This document shows positions 17,182 through 34,712 of a stretch of 64,000 nt of DNA, one piece after another. The notes beneath the pieces were generated by a model that worked only from the letters and a program-made list of their open reading frames with translations, did not search any database and was not told the DNA's origin. This DNA comes from Ascidiella aspersa. Lineage: Eukaryota. The position numbers and the translations under genes are program-made. Within the stretch, counting starts at the first letter, position 1, and every line of letters starts with the position of its first letter. The DNA lies in contig OZ004609.1 of NCBI GenBank assembly GCA_963924565.1, forward strand, positions 26,350,001 through 26,414,000, in the 5' to 3' direction.

Positions 17182-20100
17182 ATGGATATTTTTACCTGGG
17201 TTTTATGTTTGATCGCCAGCCACGGTGTTCGCCTATCAGAGGCGGGAAAAGGCGGCGGCAAGACTGCTTCAAAAGTCGGCTTGGCAGCTATTTCCCAGGT
17301 GTGTTGTTGTTGGATTTTTTGTCGAATTAGTCATTTCTGTTGCGGTCAAATGACCGGATTTCGGTTCGGCCAATTGTTGGATAGCGGAGAATTGTGGAGG
17401 TCATGTTTTTGCAAAATTTTTAGGCTACATATGAATAACTCGTAAAACAAATTCAGTGAAAAATATAAGCGGTTATAATTCTATAATTATGGTTTCCAAA
17501 AGAGACATTTTTGATTAACATTATGCCTGCTAGCAACAGTTTATATAATTTGAGCGGTTTTAAAATGTGAGAAACAGACAGGGATTTGTTTGGGTCGGGC
17601 GTTTTTCGTCAAAAATCGTAATAATAACACACACAAACATTCAAAAAAGGATTGCCGCTTTGCTGTAATGATCCAGGATGTATATTGACTAAAACTTGTA
17701 CAATGAAATACGTAATAAGGCAGTGCTTCCCAACCGTTTTCAGTTCGCGACCCACTTTAAATGCAAGTTTTATTGTTGCTATACCCACAATAAGATATTA
17801 CCAAACGAAAAAAGTTACATAAAACCTTCGACGTTACTACTGGCATACTCTCTGAAATAGTTATTGCGAAACAACGCGATTGTTAAGTATTTGTAATATT
17901 GTTGCATAGATGTACCGCTAGATAATACAATAATTTCCCGTTCTTATAGAAAACGGTAACCGTTAAAATGATTCGCGACCCACCAGTTGGTCACAACCCA
18001 CAGATCGGTAAGCACTGTTATAAGGCACTGGTTATTTGCTTGCGCGACATTGGGCTATTTTAATAAAGTCACTAATTTATTTTTGTTTATTTTTATTTCG
18101 TTGTGTAATCTGGCTAACTATTTTGTGCTGTGAAGGTTGTAGGCCTATAGAGGTCAATACATATAGTGTCTAAATTAGCAGATAAACGCAAACTAACATG
18201 TTATTTGTCGTTATATATTAATTTTTTCAGACCGGTGGTGGGTCGAATAGTGGAGGAGCTTCAGCAGTCTTCAACGCAGAACAAAACAGTCGCGGCAGCA
18301 ATGGCTCCCTGATGCTAGGCAACGTCATCGCCAGATTAAAACACCAACTTTTTTACATCAACGGTAATTTAAGGTGTTGGTTTTATAAGTATGTTTACCA
18401 CGATATCCTGCATGCGTTGCCGAGTTTTATATTATTAGTATTATCCACATTGAAATAAAGACATATTTAAAGACCTGAGTTGAAAAAACTATAACAATGT
18501 CACAAAAGACAACTTAGGAGATAAATTGAATTGTAGATTTGTAAACCTGTTTCAAATCATGTTTTTAACGAGATTGTTTTATAAGTTATTGAAATGATGA
18601 TTCGTGTACTTGACTCGGAGAGGGAACTCGCTTATGTTGACAAAACTGTTTTCGTTTATTTAACACTACACATGAAAATTAACATCGACTTAAGTATTTT
18701 GTAACGAAATGTTTGATTTAAGTTGGTTGTTTTACCTAAATTGGAGCATTCGGTGGAATTTGGTGGTGAGATACCCGAATACAGTAGTAGTTTATTCAGA
18801 TACATTTTTGCACTAAGACATTCGCTAACAACCAAACAACTCGTATCTGGTAAAATCTTCATTTTTTTTTAAGTGTTTTGTAAACTCATGTCTTCATATG
18901 TTCTTTATGAGTCCGGTCTTTTTAAAAAAATACATAAGTAGCCTACATTTTGTTAAACTTGACCTATTGTTTATTGAATACGTGTAATATAATTTGGAAT
19001 ATTGACATCTCATTGTTGCATCATTTTGCTACAGGTTATGACAAATCGGTCAGACCGGTGAGAAATCACAGCGAAAGTATCAAGTTGTCGGTGGACGTTT
19101 CATATATACAGGTATACGTTAAAATAACTTTGTTAAACAGCACCAAACAGGTTCTCTGGCCCCTTTTGGTGTAGAAGGGGGGGGGGGGGACTTTTGAATA
19201 GCTTAGTGTTATCATGTGGTTGTGGGCCGATTTTAATTATAGCCGTACATTCATTGTACTTTATTTTAAAAGTTGGTATGGCATAGAATTAAAAAAAAGG
19301 CCCACGTACCTGTCAAACTATTTTTTTGCCAACTTTAACTACATATGTAAACAAATTTTTTTCGCGCTTCGCGCTTATATCCTTCATTTTATAGTAGCGG
19401 TATGTTTTACCTTATTGTATGGCAGTGTTTTGGGCATCAAAGCGCCGTGTAATATTTAACCTTAGAATCAAATATCCTAATTCCGCCACTTTTTCGTAGT
19501 GGTTACGTAGTGGGCCTTCAATAGCTCTCTGAAAAGAGTATTTTGGGCCGCGACAAAAAAGTTTGCTGTCCACTGGTCTACGCGAACTAAATTATTTTTT
19601 AGGAGTCCGCGTTGAAAAAAATTTCTTTTATTTTAAAAGGTTTTGCGTCTCAACGAAAAGGACCAGATTCTCAAGAGCTTGTTGCGATATCGGTTGTCGT
19701 GGAAGGACGAATACCTCACGTGGAATCCCGCCGATTATGCAGGCATCACGTCCCGTAAGTTGTGGCCTTCCTGGATATTTATTTGCTTTGATAGAAAGCG
19801 AAGTCCATAACGAGCGTAACGTATATCAAGTATGAGGACAGTGGTCTAAAGTTTAGCTTAAACAGCTTCAAACGTATTTTGGGACTAGAAATACATCGTC
19901 GTCACGCAAATAAGCGTATTCCACGCAGCGGTATTCTTCATAGCGCCAATTAGGGTTCCTCTTTTTCCCGGATTTTTTCACTCCCGGGAAACGGGATTGA
20001 AAAATAAAAAAGCGGCTAATAAAGCAACTCAGGCAACGACTTTAATAGGTTTGGTAATATTTTTTTTCTTTATATTAGTCAAAAATGACATTTTTTTTTA

Positions 20101-23100
20101 AGTTTTGCTTTGTTGCCGAATAACCGGGATTGTAAAAAAAATTTCCCGGGATTCGGGATCGTTATTTCGCGGAAAATTCCCGGAGAGGAACCCTAGCGCC
20201 AATAAATCTAATATGAAAAAGTGCAAATCTAATATGAAAAGAAAAGTGCTGCACTGTTTAAGACTTTAATTGTTCATAAATTTGGCAGTATATGCCGGAC
20301 AGATTAGTTTAAACTGTGAACGAGGCAGTAAAAGAATCACATCACAACCGTTCATACTTTACTTAAACAAAAATAACAAATCGCTAAACTCAGCTATTTT
20401 AAGAACCTCGATTCTGGTAAAATGGTCACGAGAGGGCAAATGTGTAAGTCTTCTGATAGTTTCGCGTATAATGAGCCATTGTGCGTGGTCTAAAAGTTCA
20501 ATCCCTAACCGCTAAGACCCGTGCCGTTCGTTTACCGCAGTGCGCGTGCCATCGAACATCCTTTGGATTCCCGACGTGGTCTGCTACGAGGAGATCGGCG
20601 TGAAGGATTACACTCCGCGCATTCCCTACATCGAAATCGCCAGCGACGGCCTTGTTCGCTACTTCGAGCCCACCGCTTTGGAAACGACGTGCAGCGTCAA
20701 CATAGCCATGTTCCCCTTCGATTATCAGGTATACGTTCGGGTCGAGTCGGTCAAAAAATTATCGTGTATATTGCTAACAGATTAATTTTTCTTAAATTAA
20801 AAATTATACAATTTATCTTTTATATGCACTTCACGATTAATAGTAAAACATTAAATCTATTTCCCAGTCAAAATCCTTTGGTCTTCGCTTATAGTTTTAC
20901 GACATAATTACCCTTGAATCGAAAGTGCTGTGGTGCACCAGGGAAAACAAAAACACGAGTTTCGCACGTTCATTCAACTGCTTTACGACTCGCTGTATAA
21001 CTAACGATGTAAATTTTAATGAGCACAAGTCTTTCAGGCATTTTGCTTTTCTCTCAAGCGTTTGCGTCTCCTGTAACATTTGGTGAGTATTGGATATATG
21101 GCGGCGCAGGGGTGGATCCACGATTTTAGTTTAATCCGAGGCCCAAATTCTTTTTCCGATATAACGTGACGATTTACGTCATAATCTTGAAAATGTATAG
21201 GGTGTAAGTTAATCATGACTAAACTTGATTCCCCTTGTATCTACAAATCGGCTTTTGAATATTGCAAATGGCCTTACAACAGTTTTTGCCTCGACTGTTA
21301 TAAACTAAACGTTTACACGACAGCCATTAAAAAACTACGTTTGTTAACGCGTTTCAGACTTGCAAGATGACGTTCACGCCGTGGACCTTTCCAACTTCGA
21401 AAGTCGACATCCAAGCAACGCGCGGCCGAGACGAAATGCTGCAGGACATCGCCGTTTACTTCGTCAACACAGGCGAGTGGTTCTTGGACGACACTCACAT
21501 CAAAAAAACGGTAAAAATATTTAGGGACTCCAAACAAATAGGCGGTCATGTCATCTTTTTAGGGAGTATAAGTCGCTATGCATTCGTCCACTGAACAGAG
21601 TTTCGACACACATGATTATTATTTTAGAAACAGGCAGACATTTAGCTGCCGATAGGAATAGAATTGTAATGATGTCACGATTTCGAAATTGGTTGCCACT
21701 TCGTATTTTATTCCAATAGAGATACGCATCAAAAGAGACGTCTGACCTATTACACTAACATCATTATCACAGTTAAAAATCAAACGTAGTATGTTGACAC
21801 GTACTAGATCATCTTAGGCTACGAAGCCATAATTTATTGGGCGTAAAAAGGTTTAGCTACCTTTCGTCTATAACTTCGTATTTTAAGTTTTAAGAGATGA
21901 CCTCATAAATTTACGTCACAATATAAATAGACTTTTGAAATTTACTGTTTCCGGTCCAAAAATGTGAAAGTGAAATAGAGCTTAAATACATTATGTGCAA
22001 ACATGTTTTGGTTTTGATCTATTTTCTTTAAAAAAATTATTATACTTTATAACTATATGCTAACATTTCAATCAGGACTTCATTGACCACCTAAAACTAG
22101 TTCACGTACCCCCAAGGGTCCATGGACCCCAGTTAATAAAACCCTGGTTTAATCGGATGTACTTTCACCTTGACAGTCGCAAAGCTACGTGGCGCTGCTC
22201 GCCACTCATGAGGAAGAAGACGAAGATGAACACGCTGACCACGAGGACGTGGAGACCATCCTGGAGCAGAAGTTCTTCCACATGGACCCACAGAAGAGGG
22301 TCGACGAAATAGCGCCCGGCCGCCTCACCGACTTGCATTGGTTTGTTGTTACACTTTAAAATCTACTTTCATAAAGACTGAAAAGAATTGAATCAAAACT
22401 ATACTGTTTCATCGAGCGTAAAAATAATTAGAAATATGTGGGTAACAGTACAATTTCCGTAAAGTCCGGTTTGACAGTGACTCAGGTCCTGTATTGATAG
22501 TTTTTTATGGTATTTACTTTTAATCAATACTTAAAACCCCTTTTTAAAATTATTACTGTTTTCTTTCGCAGGTCGGAGGTTCAATACAAATTCACATTCC
22601 GCCGCAACTCTTCGCTTTACATGCAGGTTTATATTTTTTATTATTCCCAAATAAGTGTTATTAGCGTAGCAAATGTAATTTTGAAGTGTCAATGAAAGGT
22701 TTCCTGACTCGCCTGAAAGATAATCTTAAAACGTAGTTTTACAAAAACTTAAATACAAATACATGATTTTGTCCCGCAGAGCATGGTTTTTCCGGCGCTT
22801 CTCCTAATGACGATATCCCTCCTGGGATTTTACCTTCCCCCAGACAGCGGAGAGAGGATTGGCCTTCAGATTACCATCATGTTAACGTTCATGGTATGCA
22901 ATATGAAACGCCCCTTTGTCATTACTTAATGTAAATTTAGAGGTTGTACAATGCACATTCTGAAGATGCAGGACGAAACCGTTATACAGTTTGGTCTGAC
23001 TCCTTGTTGCTTGTACCTATCAGCATGCGAAACATATTATAGTCTATACAGCGTCGAATCAGCTTTTTTAGATTGCCTTGCTCGTTAAAATCGATATTCT

Positions 23101-25829
23101 GTTTTCGAGACATTGGTAGGCCTATAAACCCCAACGTAGTATTTCCCAATCCTTGGTGACAAGTTGCTAATCTACATTAAAACTGTCCAAACCATTCGAT
23201 CGTCAGTCATGATTTTGGTAAAAACCAAGTCGGCTGTTCAGGTTTTCCTGCTGACTGTGGGCGACATGTTTCCGGCTTCCACGGGTCCCTACCTTGGCCT
23301 GTACTTCGTGCTCTGCATGGCGATGCTGGGACTCAACATGATCATGACCGTGCTGGTTCTGCATCTGCACCACATGCCATGCGCCTCCGTGATAAAGGGT
23401 CCAAATGACGATGTGAGTTTGTAGTTTAAAATTATTGCTGCCTTAACGGTTTCGTGCTAGACGCAAAATCTATAATCAGAATTTTGTAAAAGTTAAAACG
23501 TTTTTTCGTTTTGAGTCAAGTACATGGATCATTGGATTTTTGGTAAAATTTCTTTTTGTGTTTCTTGCAGGGCGTTTACAGCATAAACATGAAAGCCGTG
23601 CCTTACTGGATCAAGGGTGCCCTATTTTTTTCGGGTTTATACCCTGAGCTTACCAGCTTCAAATTAACAGTGGACGACATTAGGGGTCGAAAGAGCAAGA
23701 TAGCAAAGGTGAGAATAGGTATGGGTATACGGAGAATTATTATCGAAACCAAAAAAAGATGCAATAATTATTAAAAATAACATAAATCAGCATAAGCTGT
23801 TGTTTAGGTCTTGCTGATGTTTTAGTTTTTAAACGAAACCAAAATTTACCTAACATAAAACCTATTTTTTGCTGTTTATTGTATTATAATAGTGGTAAAA
23901 AGGATGCTTCCTTCAATCTTCTATAGCAATAAACCTGTCTTGTCGAATTTATTTATTCACAGAAACCTGTTTTTTTCTAACCCATTCAGACGAGCGTGTC
24001 AGCGAAAGTGAAGCCTATCTTTAATCTGGTGCGTTCCAAGACGCTAGGCTCAATCAAAGTAAGCGCAAAGGCAACCGAAAAGTCGAGCGATTTCGAGCGC
24101 GGCTTCAGTAACGAGTCGTTCGAGTTGCCCGGCAACCCGGTCAAGTTCTCCGACAAGTCGGGCCAAAGGCGCCGGGCGCCGTCCACGGTCCGTTTTCGCG
24201 CAAAGAGCAGCAGCGATTCGCTGACCGACGTCGATAACCCGGAAGACACGGGAAACAGGAGAAGCAAATCGCGATCACCCCTCAACGACAGCGGTTCGTG
24301 TGCTTAAGGCGTTTAAAAACACATTCAAATATTACTCTGTAGGCATTGGTGGGATTCAATTTTTTGTCAGCCGGTTCTATCACAAAGTCATATTTTTCAG
24401 CCGGTTCTCTTACAAAAAGTTATATTTTTCGGCAAATAATTAAAGTAGTTGCAATAACAGGATGTAAACCCCATGTTCCATCGTAAAGTTAGAACCGGCT
24501 CAATCCAATCACTGCTAACACCCACGCTTAAAAGCATAGTGGTCTTTTGATTTGTCCTTATGAAGCAACAATTAAATTTTCAGACAAACAATCACAAAAG
24601 GAAAATTACTACAAATATACAAATTTACACAATGTTACGTGCGAATTTGACCATTGCACATTGAAGAAAAGGGCGTGAGCTACTTGGATATCGGCGTATT
24701 AGATAAAATGCAAAAATCCATTGACAGTAACCAGTAATGCTAACCGGTTCGCTGATCTTATAAAAAAATGGTGAGCCGGTTCAATAGAACCGGTGTGAAC
24801 TGGCTGAATCCCACCACTGTCTGTAGACCGCGATTACGCGATTCTTTACACATTTTCGAACAGAAGAACAACTGAAGATTTTCAGGCGACGAGTATAGGG
24901 TTTGTGCTGTGGAAGGGTAGGGAAATAGGCAGCGCTCGGTTTATGACATGGGTGTTGGCAAAAAATGTTGCATGTTTCTACAATAAAGCGTTGTATATTG
25001 TGTATTAAATATGATCCAAGCATGGGAGTTGTTGCGAAGAAGTTAATCTGATGTCTTGGTCTGAAAATAAATGACAAGTATGCATAGCAGCTCACAGTCA
25101 ATTAAAAACGGTTTTAGACAATTATGTTCATGTCGCTGAAAATTTTTCCGAATTCGCAATATTTAGTGATCAAAATTGACTACTTCCAATCTGAATGGGA
25201 TCCATAGGTTTAAAATCTATATATAAATATTCTAAATGTCATGGTAGTTAATTTGTCAAATTTTAAGTGCGTCGATTATGGGTCTCGAAAACAGATTTCT
25301 TAAATACCAAATTCGTTTTCACAAATACGTAATTTTCTTGCAGGTAGTCACAAATTGCACAATAAAGTTCCTGCAAATTAAGCATAGATTTAGCCAATCT
25401 TACCAAGTCGTTACTAACCTACAACACTACCTTTCGTGGGGAGTAGTTCGTCATTCACTTAATTGAAATACTTGATAATACTTCTTTCAAGTAAACCTAA
25501 AATTTGTCTCTCTTGTATTTTCTACAGACATCGAAGCGCTGTTCGAGGGCTTGTCACAAAAAGACAAATTCAGTGACCGGGCACTCGCTGAAGCGTGTCG
25601 CGAGTTGATGTCAGTCGGGCGTGACGTGTCGAACGCCACCGATTACTTACGTTGCCAGTACGACGAGCTGAGAGACGACAAACGCTCAGAGGGCATGGAG
25701 GACAAGTGGAGAGACGTGGCGCGCAAGCTGGACGTGGTCTGCCTCTACCTCTATCTATTCATTCTGCTCATGTTCCACCTTTGCCTGGTGATCATCATAT
25801 TCGCCGCGCCGGGACTCACCGACCATTAA
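17182..25829 (+). CDS. Cys-loop (pentameric) ligand-gated cation channel subunit, 5-HT3/ZAC-like, non-alpha (13 exons)
   Basis: Exons 17182-17298, 18231-18363, 19035-19111, 19640-19754, 20541-20728, 21358-21510, 22177-22340, 22572-22626, 22780-22893, 23242-23412, 23571-23708, 23990-24293 and 25528-25829 join in frame. Signal peptide; GYDKSVRPV; WIPD; Cys loop CSVNIAMFPFDYQTC (C-x13-C); FVNTGEW; GFYLPPDSGERI; four TM helices. The IPYI, TFTPW, NxGEW and GFYLPPxSGER segments resemble 5-HT3A as recalled. Confidence 0.92.
17721..18017. mobile_element. hAT MITE, same family as 14821-15037 and 57882-59904
   Basis: cagtgcttcccaacc...cgcgaccca...aagcactg; TSD taataagg/ttataagg. Confidence 0.88.
19951..20195. 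mobile_element. hAT-like MITE
   Basis: TIRs tagggttcctct / agaggaacccta with a perfect 8-bp TSD gcgccaat. Confidence 0.92.
24344..24819. mobile_element. hAT MITE with AACCGG subrepeats
   Basis: TIRs cattggtgggattca / tgaatcccaccactg; TSD tctgtagg/tctgtaga. Confidence 0.88.
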
Positions 25830-27351: not shown

Positions 27352-28625
27352 TTCTAACCACATAGGCTACGAACAGAAAACACGTTTTTACTGCCATGAC
27401 GCACAATGTAACTATAAATATTGTGGGTGTGCCATTCGTGATCATCAAAAATATAAACAGGAAGCAACTCAATAGCTATGTTTATTGAAACAGGGGTGAA
27501 TGGGTGATGTAAAGGAATAGACTGGATTTATTTTTTTCTTGTTAACTCTGTAAAAATATAAATTTACATATTTTTCAATGACAGGTCACACACTAATTTA
27601 ACGTTGGGTTACTGTGTGCTCTTTCTTATATGTTTAACTCTGTGCGCCCAGGTAAAATTAAAGTTCCCTTTTCATATCGCGTTCACCACCGTCCTGGTAA
27701 ACTAAACACTGCTCCTGATGCCCTTTCAAGAATTTCTTCTCTATGTTTCATGGGAAATGCTGGACTAGTCCAAATCCATAGGCAATTGGGGCACCCTGGG
27801 GTAACACGCCTACTTCATTTTAGAAAAGCGCTCAACTTAGCTTACTCTATTAATGAGGTTCGGCAAACATGTGCAGAATGTAAAGTTTGTGCCGAAGTAA
27901 AACCTCGTTTTCACCGCAAGTCTAATAAGTCTTTAATCAAAGCTTCTGCTCCATGGGAAAGAATTAGCATTGGTTTTAAAGGAGCTGTCAGGGGTAGAAG
28001 ACATTACATTCTCTTTGTGGTAGATGAGTTTTCCCGTTTTCCTTTTGCAATTCCCTGTTCTGACATGACTACCAAAACCGTCATAGCTTCGCTAACTTCG
28101 CTTTTTGCTCTTTTTGGTCTACCCTCAATTTCGTCCACAGTGACCGGGGCACAGCCTTTGCTTCTGGTGAATTTAAAAAGTTTTTGACCGATAGAGGAGT
28201 GGTACCAAGTCGGACTACTCCCTATCATCCTACTGGTAATAGCCAATGTGAAAGAGTGAACCAAACCATATGGCGAACGGTTAAACTCCTTTTAAAGGAC
28301 AGGGGTCTGGGCGAAGACAGATGGGAAGAAATCTTAGTGGAGGCCCTTCATTCCGTAAGATCTCTGCTTTGCACCTCAACAAACCAAACCCCTCATGAGC
28401 GTTTCTTAAACTTCGGACGAAGAACTATGCTGGGGAGATCATTACCATCATGGCTGCTCCAGCCTGGAAAAGTTTTGATGAGACGTTTTGTGCGAAATAA
28501 AGGAGATCCCTTAGTTGATGAGGTAGACTTGCTGGAAGCCAATCTAAGTTTTGCACATATTCGGCTTCCAGGGGGGCGTGAATCGACAGTGTCTGTGCAG
28601 GATTTAGCTTCTTGCCCTGAAGACT

Positions 28626-29427
28626 GTAGTAGCCACTTCGTCATATTGTGTTTACACAGAGAATTTTTGTTTTTAATCGATGTGTCGTAACGGAAAATTT
28701 TCAGTAAAAATCTATGGCCTAAATTCTTTGCAACCACATTGTAATGTTTGCGTTACTCATTGCAGCCAATGTGCAAACGATAAGCGGAAAGTTTTCGGTA
28801 AAATTCCGTTACGTAGATTTCTTGCAACCACATTGTAATGTTTGCGATATCTTTGCAGCGAATTTGCAAAAATTCAAATTGCTGACACCAATTTTTATGC
28901 GTCAAGGCATTTATATCCGTTTAATGTGAGCGCTTTGTTTTGAAATTCGCCTTATTGTCAACAATGCGGTATTTTTTAGAATCGAACGCCAGTTACGTCG
29001 CAATGTAGATCGAAGCGCTTTTGTTCAAGCCATATTGGGACAAAAATATTATTTCCGTCTATAAGAGTCGAGAGAAAAAGGTTTAGACCACGCCTTGTTG
29101 TCACGTGATTTATTATTGAAAATCGTAAGAATATCTACGTCAATATTTCCTGTGCATTACGTCAATATTTCCTGTGCTTTAGAAATATTTTCGCCAATAA
29201 GTATAGTCGCACAATCGATTAAAAACCAGTATCAACCAGTATCAACCAGTATCACCCAGTACTGCCTAGTGCAGAGAGAGAGGCTTTTACAGCTTTTACT
29301 AAGACAGCAAAGTTGACTGTTCATGTATCTGAACTAAAGGAAAGAATTGGACCTGAATGGCCTCACGAAGACAGGCCATCTCAAATCTTGTAGGAGTGTG
29401 GTCGATTCATCTTGGCAATTATATAAA
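28626..29427. mobile_element. Unclassified 802-bp insertion interrupting the Gypsy integrase
   Basis: Flanked by the direct repeat TGAAGACT (28618-28625, 29428-29435); excision restores the reading frame ...SCPED/SLIRS... Confidence 0.8.
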
Positions 29428-31163: not shown

Positions 31164-31277
31164 TTTATTTTTCTATGTCATATTTTCTTATGCTTCTCCA
31201 AACGTTTAGCTGGTACACGTGCAAAACATTTAGATAAAAAGATCAAAGCATTAAGTTTGTTTTCTAGATAGAAAAAA

Positions 31278-34712
<3,435 letters not shown>

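Follow-up and report, generated by a model that had tools for sequence, protein, structure and literature searches.

What is encoded at positions 22177-22340 of the forward strand in the window analysed here, and what may its product do for the protein? The window is a stretch of 64,000 nucleotides (nt) of the ascidian Ascidiella aspersa (assembly GCA_963924565.1, contig OZ004609.1, positions 26,350,001 to 26,414,000), and all positions below refer to it unless another locus is named. The segment lies in a cation-type Cys-loop receptor gene, between the GEW strand (beta9) and the aromatic residue of loop C. In Cys-loop receptors, loop C is the hairpin of beta9 and beta10, which closes down on the agonist site; it is normally short, and its movement as a lid links the binding of agonist to gating. 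We found that 22177-22340 is very probably a constitutive exon (E6) of an ascidian-specific, cation-selective Cys-loop receptor subunit, sister to vertebrate 5-HT3A, and that it builds an extension of loop C. A sequence-only reading of the window had taken this exon for loop C of a 5-HT3/ZAC-like channel and its acidic, His-rich residues for a candidate metal or proton sensor.

E6 is a coding exon of 164 nt with AG/GT borders, starting in phase 0 and ending in phase 2. Its acceptor AG is at 22175-22176 (...ttgacag before the exon) and its donor GT at 22341-22342 (gtttgt after it). It holds 54 codons plus 2 nt, and the translation of 22177-22338 gives the same 54 residues that the sequence-only reading had quoted. 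The upstream exon stops at 21510 in phase 0 after ...GEWFLDDTHIKKT (...HIKKT, then the donor gtaaaa), and E7, which starts at 22572, gives the third base of a split Trp codon (TG/G) followed by SEVQYKFTFRRN. With this length and these phases, skipping of E6 therefore frameshifts every transmembrane exon. Thus, splice sites, phases and translation all bear out the claim that the exon is obligate for the frame. The claimed spacing was also counted correctly: in one and the same alignment, 64 residues separate GEW from the loop C aromatic (the Trp of the split codon) here, against 19 in vertebrate 5-HT3A. Furthermore, E6 and E7 contain no Cys, hence the vicinal Cys pair of the nAChR alpha loop C tip is absent, and the identification of E6 with loop C stands.

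Several properties of E6 were in line with a real exon. It is a GC-rich open frame amid an AT-rich intron. No tandem repeat was found in or around it, therefore its acidic run is not a microsatellite, and the acidic/His block is written in mixed codons. A Pfam search of E6 gave no match; the ligand-binding domain profile matched on E3-E5 and not on E6, so that E6 sits just where the profile reaches loop C. The whole-genome search with E6 (308.6 Mb) returned one other match, in the paralog P2, and no second copy near the gene. Therefore, E6 does not belong to an array of mutually exclusive exons. The exon has an equivalent in annotated proteins of other ascidians as well, namely those of Phallusia, Ciona, Clavelina, and Styela, and it is thus old. 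In the comparison with the Phallusia ortholog P0139, the identity was 76% for E4, 57% for E5, 62% for E6, 67% for E7, 95% for E8, and 86% for E9. The value for E6 falls among those of its neighbours (57-67%), which suggests that E6 is constrained like the adjacent ligand-binding exons. A search with E6 alone against 5.8 billion proteins, limited to proteins of 30-95 residues and so with full-length receptors outside its scope, found nothing, and the top score of a look-alike search in the ESM Atlas (0.81) was uninformative.

The transcript evidence came from one RNA-seq run of the species, of which ~6% was examined, with junctions listed from at least three reads. Depth on the gene was ~2 reads per exon, and no junction reached the three-read threshold. 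This depth came solely from read pairs whose first mate maps to the minus strand; in most stranded libraries, such pairs derive from plus-strand RNA. About two reads lay over E7, with depth confined to the exon: the bin holding the 55-nt E7 received only ~105 letters, and from the same reads ~100 letters went to the bin in which E6 ends and ~67 to those that contain E8. This pattern fits reads spliced from E6 to E7 to E8, because unspliced 151-nt reads cannot give such depths. Thus, the depth arithmetic is weak support for E6-E7-E8 splicing, including the proposed junction 22340/22572; no read spanned the other proposed junction, 21510/22177. In addition, the variants listed from DNA contigs of a second individual were mostly intronic, and the two exonic ones among those listed (22617 and 23615) were both synonymous by codon reading.

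It is very unlikely that the open frame is unused or that a shorter in-frame version of E6 is the normal one. The missing read over 21510/22177 speaks for such an artefact or optional exon and against constitutive use, at ~2 reads per exon and a junction threshold of at least three reads; so does an in-frame CAG at 22293-22295 inside E6, which is preceded by a pyrimidine-rich stretch. However, the frame is broken if E6 is skipped, the 5' third of E6 (SQSY...) is kept in P2 and in other species, the genome holds no alternative copy except that of P2, and the RNA depth over E6-E8 is too low for unspliced reads.

The class of the receptor was read from domain searches, structural relatives and a phylogeny. 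In Pfam searches exon by exon, Neur_chan_LBD matched E3-E5 and Neur_chan_memb matched E8, E9 and the last exon; E3, E4 and E8 each cleared the curated cutoff singly, and E7 was too short for the search to be of use. The ortholog P0139 has both PF02931 and PF02932. The Cys-loop is C-x13-C around FPFD, with its first Cys at the end of E4 and its second at the start of E5. The second transmembrane segment (M2) starts with PPDSGERIGLQ, which is the cation type: the aligned 5-HT3A and alpha7-like sequences have PPDSGER, and the alpha10-like sequence has PPDSGEK. Among solved structures, 5-HT3A was the best match to E4 (E 5e-9), E5 and E9. Full-length P0139 matched solved 5-HT3A structures at E 1e-48 and nAChR subunits at 1e-41, and the P0139 model, too, had 5-HT3A as its top fold match. 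When the Clavelina protein P0005 was used as a full-length query, the first twelve matches were ascidian proteins (E <=1e-94), followed by vertebrate 5-HT3A.

The maximum-likelihood tree was rooted on alpha7/alpha10-like sequences and included few nAChR sequences and no ZAC sequence. In this tree, the ascidian proteins formed an ascidian-only clade (support 100/99) that was sister to 5-HT3A (93/93). The topology was unchanged when the loop C columns were removed, and the sister relationship to 5-HT3A then had support of 93/92. Within the clade, the gene paired with Phallusia P0139 (97/96 and 98/93), and P2 was sister to the pair (86/83). Judged from these comparisons, the gene encodes a Cys-loop receptor of the cation type, and 5-HT3A is its nearest relative both among solved structures and among vertebrate receptors. 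The phylogenetic check proposed by the earlier reading thus gave a clade that groups with 5-HT3A and not with the alpha7-/alpha10-like outgroup, and the group, found in ascidians only, is lineage-specific. Of the label "5-HT3/ZAC-like", the first half is upheld by sequence, fold and tree; ZAC was absent among the listed matches.

The agonist site shows both retention and change. The site residues of 5-HT3, in human numbering, are W184, Y235, E237, E130, W91, and R93 (PMC9977066). In our alignment, W184 (the loop B Trp), E237 and R93 were kept and an acidic residue stood at E130; Y235 was replaced by Trp, W91 by Arg, and the loop E tyrosines were partly changed. The Trp of the split codon aligns to Tyr235, and the Glu two residues on aligns to E237. 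At the loop D position W91, Arg was found in this gene, in Ciona, in Phallusia and in some Clavelina members, and Trp was retained in Styela P0015 and P0133, Clavelina P0140 and the paralog P3, which belong to deeper ascidian branches. Therefore, the loop D change is specific to one subclade.

Compared with vertebrate 5-HT3A (for example PDB 6np0, 4pir, and 8bl8), the ascidian receptors share the FPFD Cys-loop, the loop B Trp, the [WFY]-x-E motif at the loop C tip, the cation-type PPDSGER start of M2, and a long loop between M3 and M4 with a terminal helix. However, loop C of this gene is ~45 residues longer, with a predicted folded module and an acidic/His tip, the subclade has the loop D replacement just described, and the ascidian M2 and pre-M1 regions have their own nearly invariant sequence. 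The alpha subunits of nAChR are the second-best relatives, with the same overall fold and a cation-type pore, but the ascidian loop C is without their vicinal Cys pair and the clade does not join the alpha7-/alpha10-like outgroup.

To collect relatives, E4 was used as a query in a HMMER search of 1.84 billion representative proteins, followed by look-ups. Full-length relatives were returned from Ciona intestinalis, Clavelina lepadiformis, Styela clava, and Phallusia mammillata. They include Ciona XP_018671462/P0135, P0137 and P0138, Clavelina XP_076805164 and CAK8681888, and Styela XP_039258915. These database proteins belong to the same family and have the extended loop C, and P. mammillata P0139 is the ortholog of our gene. 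They differ in being automatic predictions with mixed names (5-HT3A-like, nAChR alpha-9-like, beta-3-like, acr-16-like, and uncharacterized). Loop C spans 38-67 residues in all returned relatives but one Styela protein (P0133/P0018), and it is long in 14 of the 15 scorable family members, from three ascidian orders. Thus, the long loop C is a trait of the family and is not special to this gene. In addition, the motif [FM]-x-[MI]-[DN]-P ... V-x-[DE]-[VI]-[AY]-P-x-R-x-T-x-x-H-W was common to 11 members of the three orders. The best-conserved part of loop C is this folded C-terminal module and not the acidic run; the stretch between the conserved ends varies in length (~10-30 residues) and in sequence.

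There were three family members in the A. aspersa genome, namely this gene, P2 and P3. P2 lies ~3.4 Mb off on the minus strand of the same chromosome and has an equivalent exon with the same phases. This exon follows an E5-like phase-0 exon and an AG, starts with SQSY, and ends in CTGCAT-TG before the donor gtatgt, and the next exon completes the Trp codon. It is 48% identical to E6, and it is without the ten-residue stretch HEEEDEDEHA. P3 was found at locus L005 (G000:C8, ~26.52 Mb, minus strand), where minisatellites are built from its own exon-intron junctions (L005:1-600 and L005:1650-2100). Upstream of the real E5 there are about nine copies of the E5 acceptor with the first seven codons; downstream of the M2 exon, a 28-nt unit that combines the end of this exon with its donor is repeated at least 14 times. 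The loop C exon of P3 (GTGDDEVHFEHH...DSMFAE; L005:815-917, minus) is out of frame with the E5-like donor through the sole nearby AG, which suggests that a micro-exon or another acceptor is missing from the P3 model. Moreover, its 3' intron is two codons off the position used in this gene. Among the relatives, the C. intestinalis RefSeq protein P0001 (XP_078495011.1) is without the E5 and loop C exons and has an unrelated stretch between FPFDQQ and beta10; this missing E5/E6 region is probably a gene-model error.

The anatomy of the extension was examined in AlphaFold2 monomer models of the relatives P0139 and Ciona P0138. In both models, beta9 runs through SQS and is followed by a short helix. 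The acidic/His run is then a coil, with a predicted local distance difference test score (pLDDT) of 58-70. After this run, P0139 has a helix; both models then show a four-residue strand at [FY]-x-M-D, followed by a turn, a short helix and finally beta10, which bears the loop C aromatic Trp (the 5-HT3A Tyr235 position) and the following Glu (the E237 position). The conserved module has a pLDDT of 88-97 in both models, and therefore the insert is more than a disordered loop. The extension is thus predicted to consist of a short helix after SQSY, a flexible acidic/His tip, and a folded module that runs into beta10.

The acidic/His cluster was compared among the relatives, since the earlier reading had asked for its conservation in orthologs. 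The block of this gene, THEEEDEDEHADHEDVE, and that of Phallusia P0139, EHEGEDEDEHEEHEDVD, are identical at 12 of 17 residues, and all three His are in register. A shuffled Phallusia block reached the same match in 2 of 100,000 trials (permutation p = 2e-5), and the tree distance between the two genes is ~0.8 substitutions per site. Thus, the H/E/D residues are kept in this ortholog, and the lack of conservation that would have refuted the earlier reading was not seen. When the loop region of P0139 was used as a query, only P0139 itself was matched, and no further ortholog bearing the block was found in that collection. The corresponding run of Ciona P0138 is EHDDHDDDHDDD, and comparable His/acid runs occur in Clavelina P0007 (SDHDHNH), Clavelina P0140 (EEEHDH) and the paralog P3 (DDEVHFEHH); such a run recurs also in Clavelina P0125. 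His makes up 5-9% of 10 of the 14 long loops, against ~2% in the rest of the same proteins. D and E together make up 29-31% of the whole loop in this gene and in P0139, with few K/R.

We also considered a single origin of the block in this gene, P0139 and Ciona P0138. This grouping, which was chosen after the tree had been seen, was rejected by the approximately unbiased (AU) test (p-AU 0.01). Therefore, Ciona P0138 is not an ortholog of this gene, and it follows that the His cluster either arose several times or is old and was repeatedly lost. Losses did occur, as P2, Ciona P0025 and P0137, and Styela P0015 show.

What could the extension do? The mechanism that we prefer is a tentative one. 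The folded module would add another layer to the lid over the agonist site, and the acidic/His tip may be a low-affinity site for divalent cations (Zn2+, Cu2+, Ni2+, Ca2+) and/or protons. For His side chains set among carboxylates, titration close to physiological pH is expected. Occupancy of the tip would alter lid closure, so that metals or pH would modulate gating by an organic agonist and not act as the primary agonist. A hint of function lies in the residue order of the block, which is kept in Phallusia P0139, in the recurrence of His/acid runs in other members, in the His enrichment of most long loops, and in the mixed codons of the non-repetitive block. Several points weigh against this proposal. 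The tip is predicted to be flexible, with no pre-formed coordination site, in structures that are monomers predicted for the relatives P0139 and P0138 and not for this protein. Millimolar Ca2+ and Mg2+ of sea water and ascidian blood would screen a run of carboxylates. Long loops with little or no His cluster occur in P2, Ciona P0025 and P0137, and Styela P0015, and thus the cluster is not needed for the basic function of the family. Finally, the only known metal-gated relative, ZAC, uses neither His/Asp/Glu nor loop C (PMC13036004). A stronger form, in which the tip is a built-in sensor and Zn2+, Cu2+, another transition metal or the protonation of His itself moves loop C and gates the channel, is in our judgement quite improbable. 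If true, it would mean a directly metal- or pH-gated 5-HT3-type channel in ascidians, including the metal-accumulating Ascidiidae, with a mechanism unlike that of ZAC.

Two readings need no metal. It is possible, and we hold it with similar reserve, that only the module is functional, for example as a latch to the neighbouring subunit or a dock for an accessory protein, and that the acidic/His run is a flexible, soluble linker under compositional constraint that binds no ligand. The module is indeed the part common to the three ascidian orders, the middle varies in length and sequence, the acidic/His run has the lowest confidence in both models, and several family members are without His in it. 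However, a pure spacer is expected to drift, and both the residue order and all three His were conserved between this gene and Phallusia over the distance given above; His enrichment also recurs in separate paralog lineages. The other reading, which we consider unlikely, is that the negative tip acts as an electrostatic antenna that concentrates or steers a cationic transmitter (an amine or a choline ester), with His tuning it by pH. The acid content of the loop in this gene and P0139, its place at the entrance of the agonist site, and the retained 5-HT3-type loop B Trp, loop C aromatic and Glu would suit such a role. However, the pocket of the subclade is remodelled by the loop D Arg, high extracellular ionic strength weakens steering, and paralogs do without the acidic run.

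The reading that the gene is a tunicate counterpart of the zinc-activated channel (ZAC), gated directly by Zn2+, Cu2+ or H+, is highly improbable. ZAC is a cationic Cys-loop receptor gated by these same ions (PMC13036004), and the His/acid composition of the loop is the sole point in favour of this reading. The 2026 structures (PDB 8YX6 and 8WGE) showed that the short loop C of ZAC neither moves nor binds Zn2+; the ion is held at the orthosteric site by aromatic residues, through cation-pi contacts with Tyr176 of loop B and Phe67 of beta1, and mutation of His, Asp or Glu has little effect (PMC13036004). Set against this published description, the loop C found here, the longest seen, is the reverse of that of ZAC. 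Furthermore, no ZAC chain was among the 53 matches of E4 or the best 60 full-length matches listed, all of which were 5-HT3A or nAChR, and the fold matches listed were likewise all 5-HT3A or nAChR; the tree, which holds no ZAC sequence, puts the family beside 5-HT3A. On the listed sequence and fold matches, with 8YX6 and 8WGE assumed to be present in the libraries, and on the short ZAC loop C, kinship with ZAC was rejected.

Modulation of gating through metals or protons, as in the mechanism that we prefer, has parallels in other members of the superfamily. In GlyR, GABA-A, alpha7 and GLIC, extracellular His/Glu/Asp side chains form discrete Zn2+, Ca2+ or H+ sites that modulate gating, and each such site is made up of two to four residues that are fixed in place on a folded surface or at an interface. 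In contrast, the feature described here is a flexible, low-complexity run on the tip of loop C.

The layout of the gene is given in Table 1. The searches for this gene were run exon by exon, and the joined translation was used solely for alignment and trees. For E1, tblastn of P0139 residues 17-40 gave 87.5% identity. The phase of E1 does not join 19035 directly, and therefore at least one N-terminal exon is missing between 17298 and 19035. E8 was 92-95% identical over the subclade members compared.

Table 1. Features of the receptor gene, in window coordinates
Feature	Position	Strand	Evidence
E1, probable first coding exon	17182-17298	+	ATG open frame, GT donor, signal-peptide-like start
E2, start of ligand-binding domain (YDKSVRPV...)	19035-19111	+	Splice sites, frame, family alignment
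E3, loop D region	19640-19754	+	Pfam Neur_chan_LBD positions 38-74, E 2.4e-6; alignment
E4, loops A and E, first Cys of Cys-loop, FPFD	20541-20728	+	Neur_chan_LBD 76-138, E 3e-10
E5, second Cys of Cys-loop, loop B Trp, GEW of beta9	21358-21510	+	Neur_chan_LBD 139-189
High-copy interspersed repeat, intron 5	21903-22134		DNA word depth 8,000-25,000; outside exon
E6, loop C extension	22177-22340	+	Splice sites, phases, translation; counterparts in P2 and four ascidians
Acidic/His block (THEEEDEDEHADHEDVE) in E6	22204-22254	+	17 residues; alignment to Phallusia P0139
Conserved C-terminal module (..FFHMDP..V.EIAP.R.T.LH and split Trp), into beta10	22258-22340	+	Family alignment
E7, third base of loop C Trp, Glu (5-HT3A E237), beta10, pre-M1 RRNSSLYMQ	22572-22626	+	Frame, alignment, RNA
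E8, M1 and M2 start (PPDSGERIGLQ, Glu at -1')	22780-22893	+	Neur_chan_memb, E 1e-8
E9, M2 end and M3	23242-23412	+	Best solved relative 5-HT3A, E 2e-5
E10, post-M3	23571-23708	+	In-phase acceptor, gtgaga donor; tblastn of P0139 392-438; RNA depth
E11, intracellular loop, ends in phase 1	23990-24293	+	Open frame, splice sites; weak tblastn of P0139 440-510
Last exon, amphipathic helix, M4, stop	25528-25829	+	Neur_chan_memb 167-231; 60% identity to P0139; RNA depth

The repeat of intron 5, whose ends at 21903 and 22134 are loose, stops 43 nt before the E6 acceptor, and single-copy bins near it have a DNA word depth of roughly 40-130. A second very high-copy intron repeat was found at 24347-24765; over both repeats the word depth was 3,000-34,000, against ~40-130 nearby. 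These high-copy intron repeats supply most of the RNA reads placed on the window, on both strands. Farther downstream, the window holds long open frames of a retrotransposon integrase-like type at 27597-28687 (+), split over two frames around 28064-28184, and, by motif, exons of a serine-carboxypeptidase-like gene at 31272-31977 (+).

In the literature search, we found no paper describing the ascidian clade or the loop C extension. The proteins of the family are already in public databases, solely as inconsistently named automatic predictions. A 2023 phylogeny of 5-HT3 receptors found none from tunicates, and no loop C insert that it reported exceeded 17 residues (PMC9977066). In addition, a 2019 nAChR study discarded any Ciona or amphioxus sequences that grouped with HTR3 and did not describe them (PMC6354393).

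The results indicate that the closest invertebrate relatives of the vertebrates keep a 5-HT3-type family with an extra module and a charged, His-rich tip on the lid, in three ascidian orders. Should the tip bind metals or protons, it would give this receptor class a new means of modulation or gating, and it would offer a natural template for placing engineered sensors on loop C. Should it bind neither, the family would remain a set of orphan chordate receptors for which we found no description. The family is also relevant to the timing and manner in which the 5-HT3 lineage acquired gating by serotonin.

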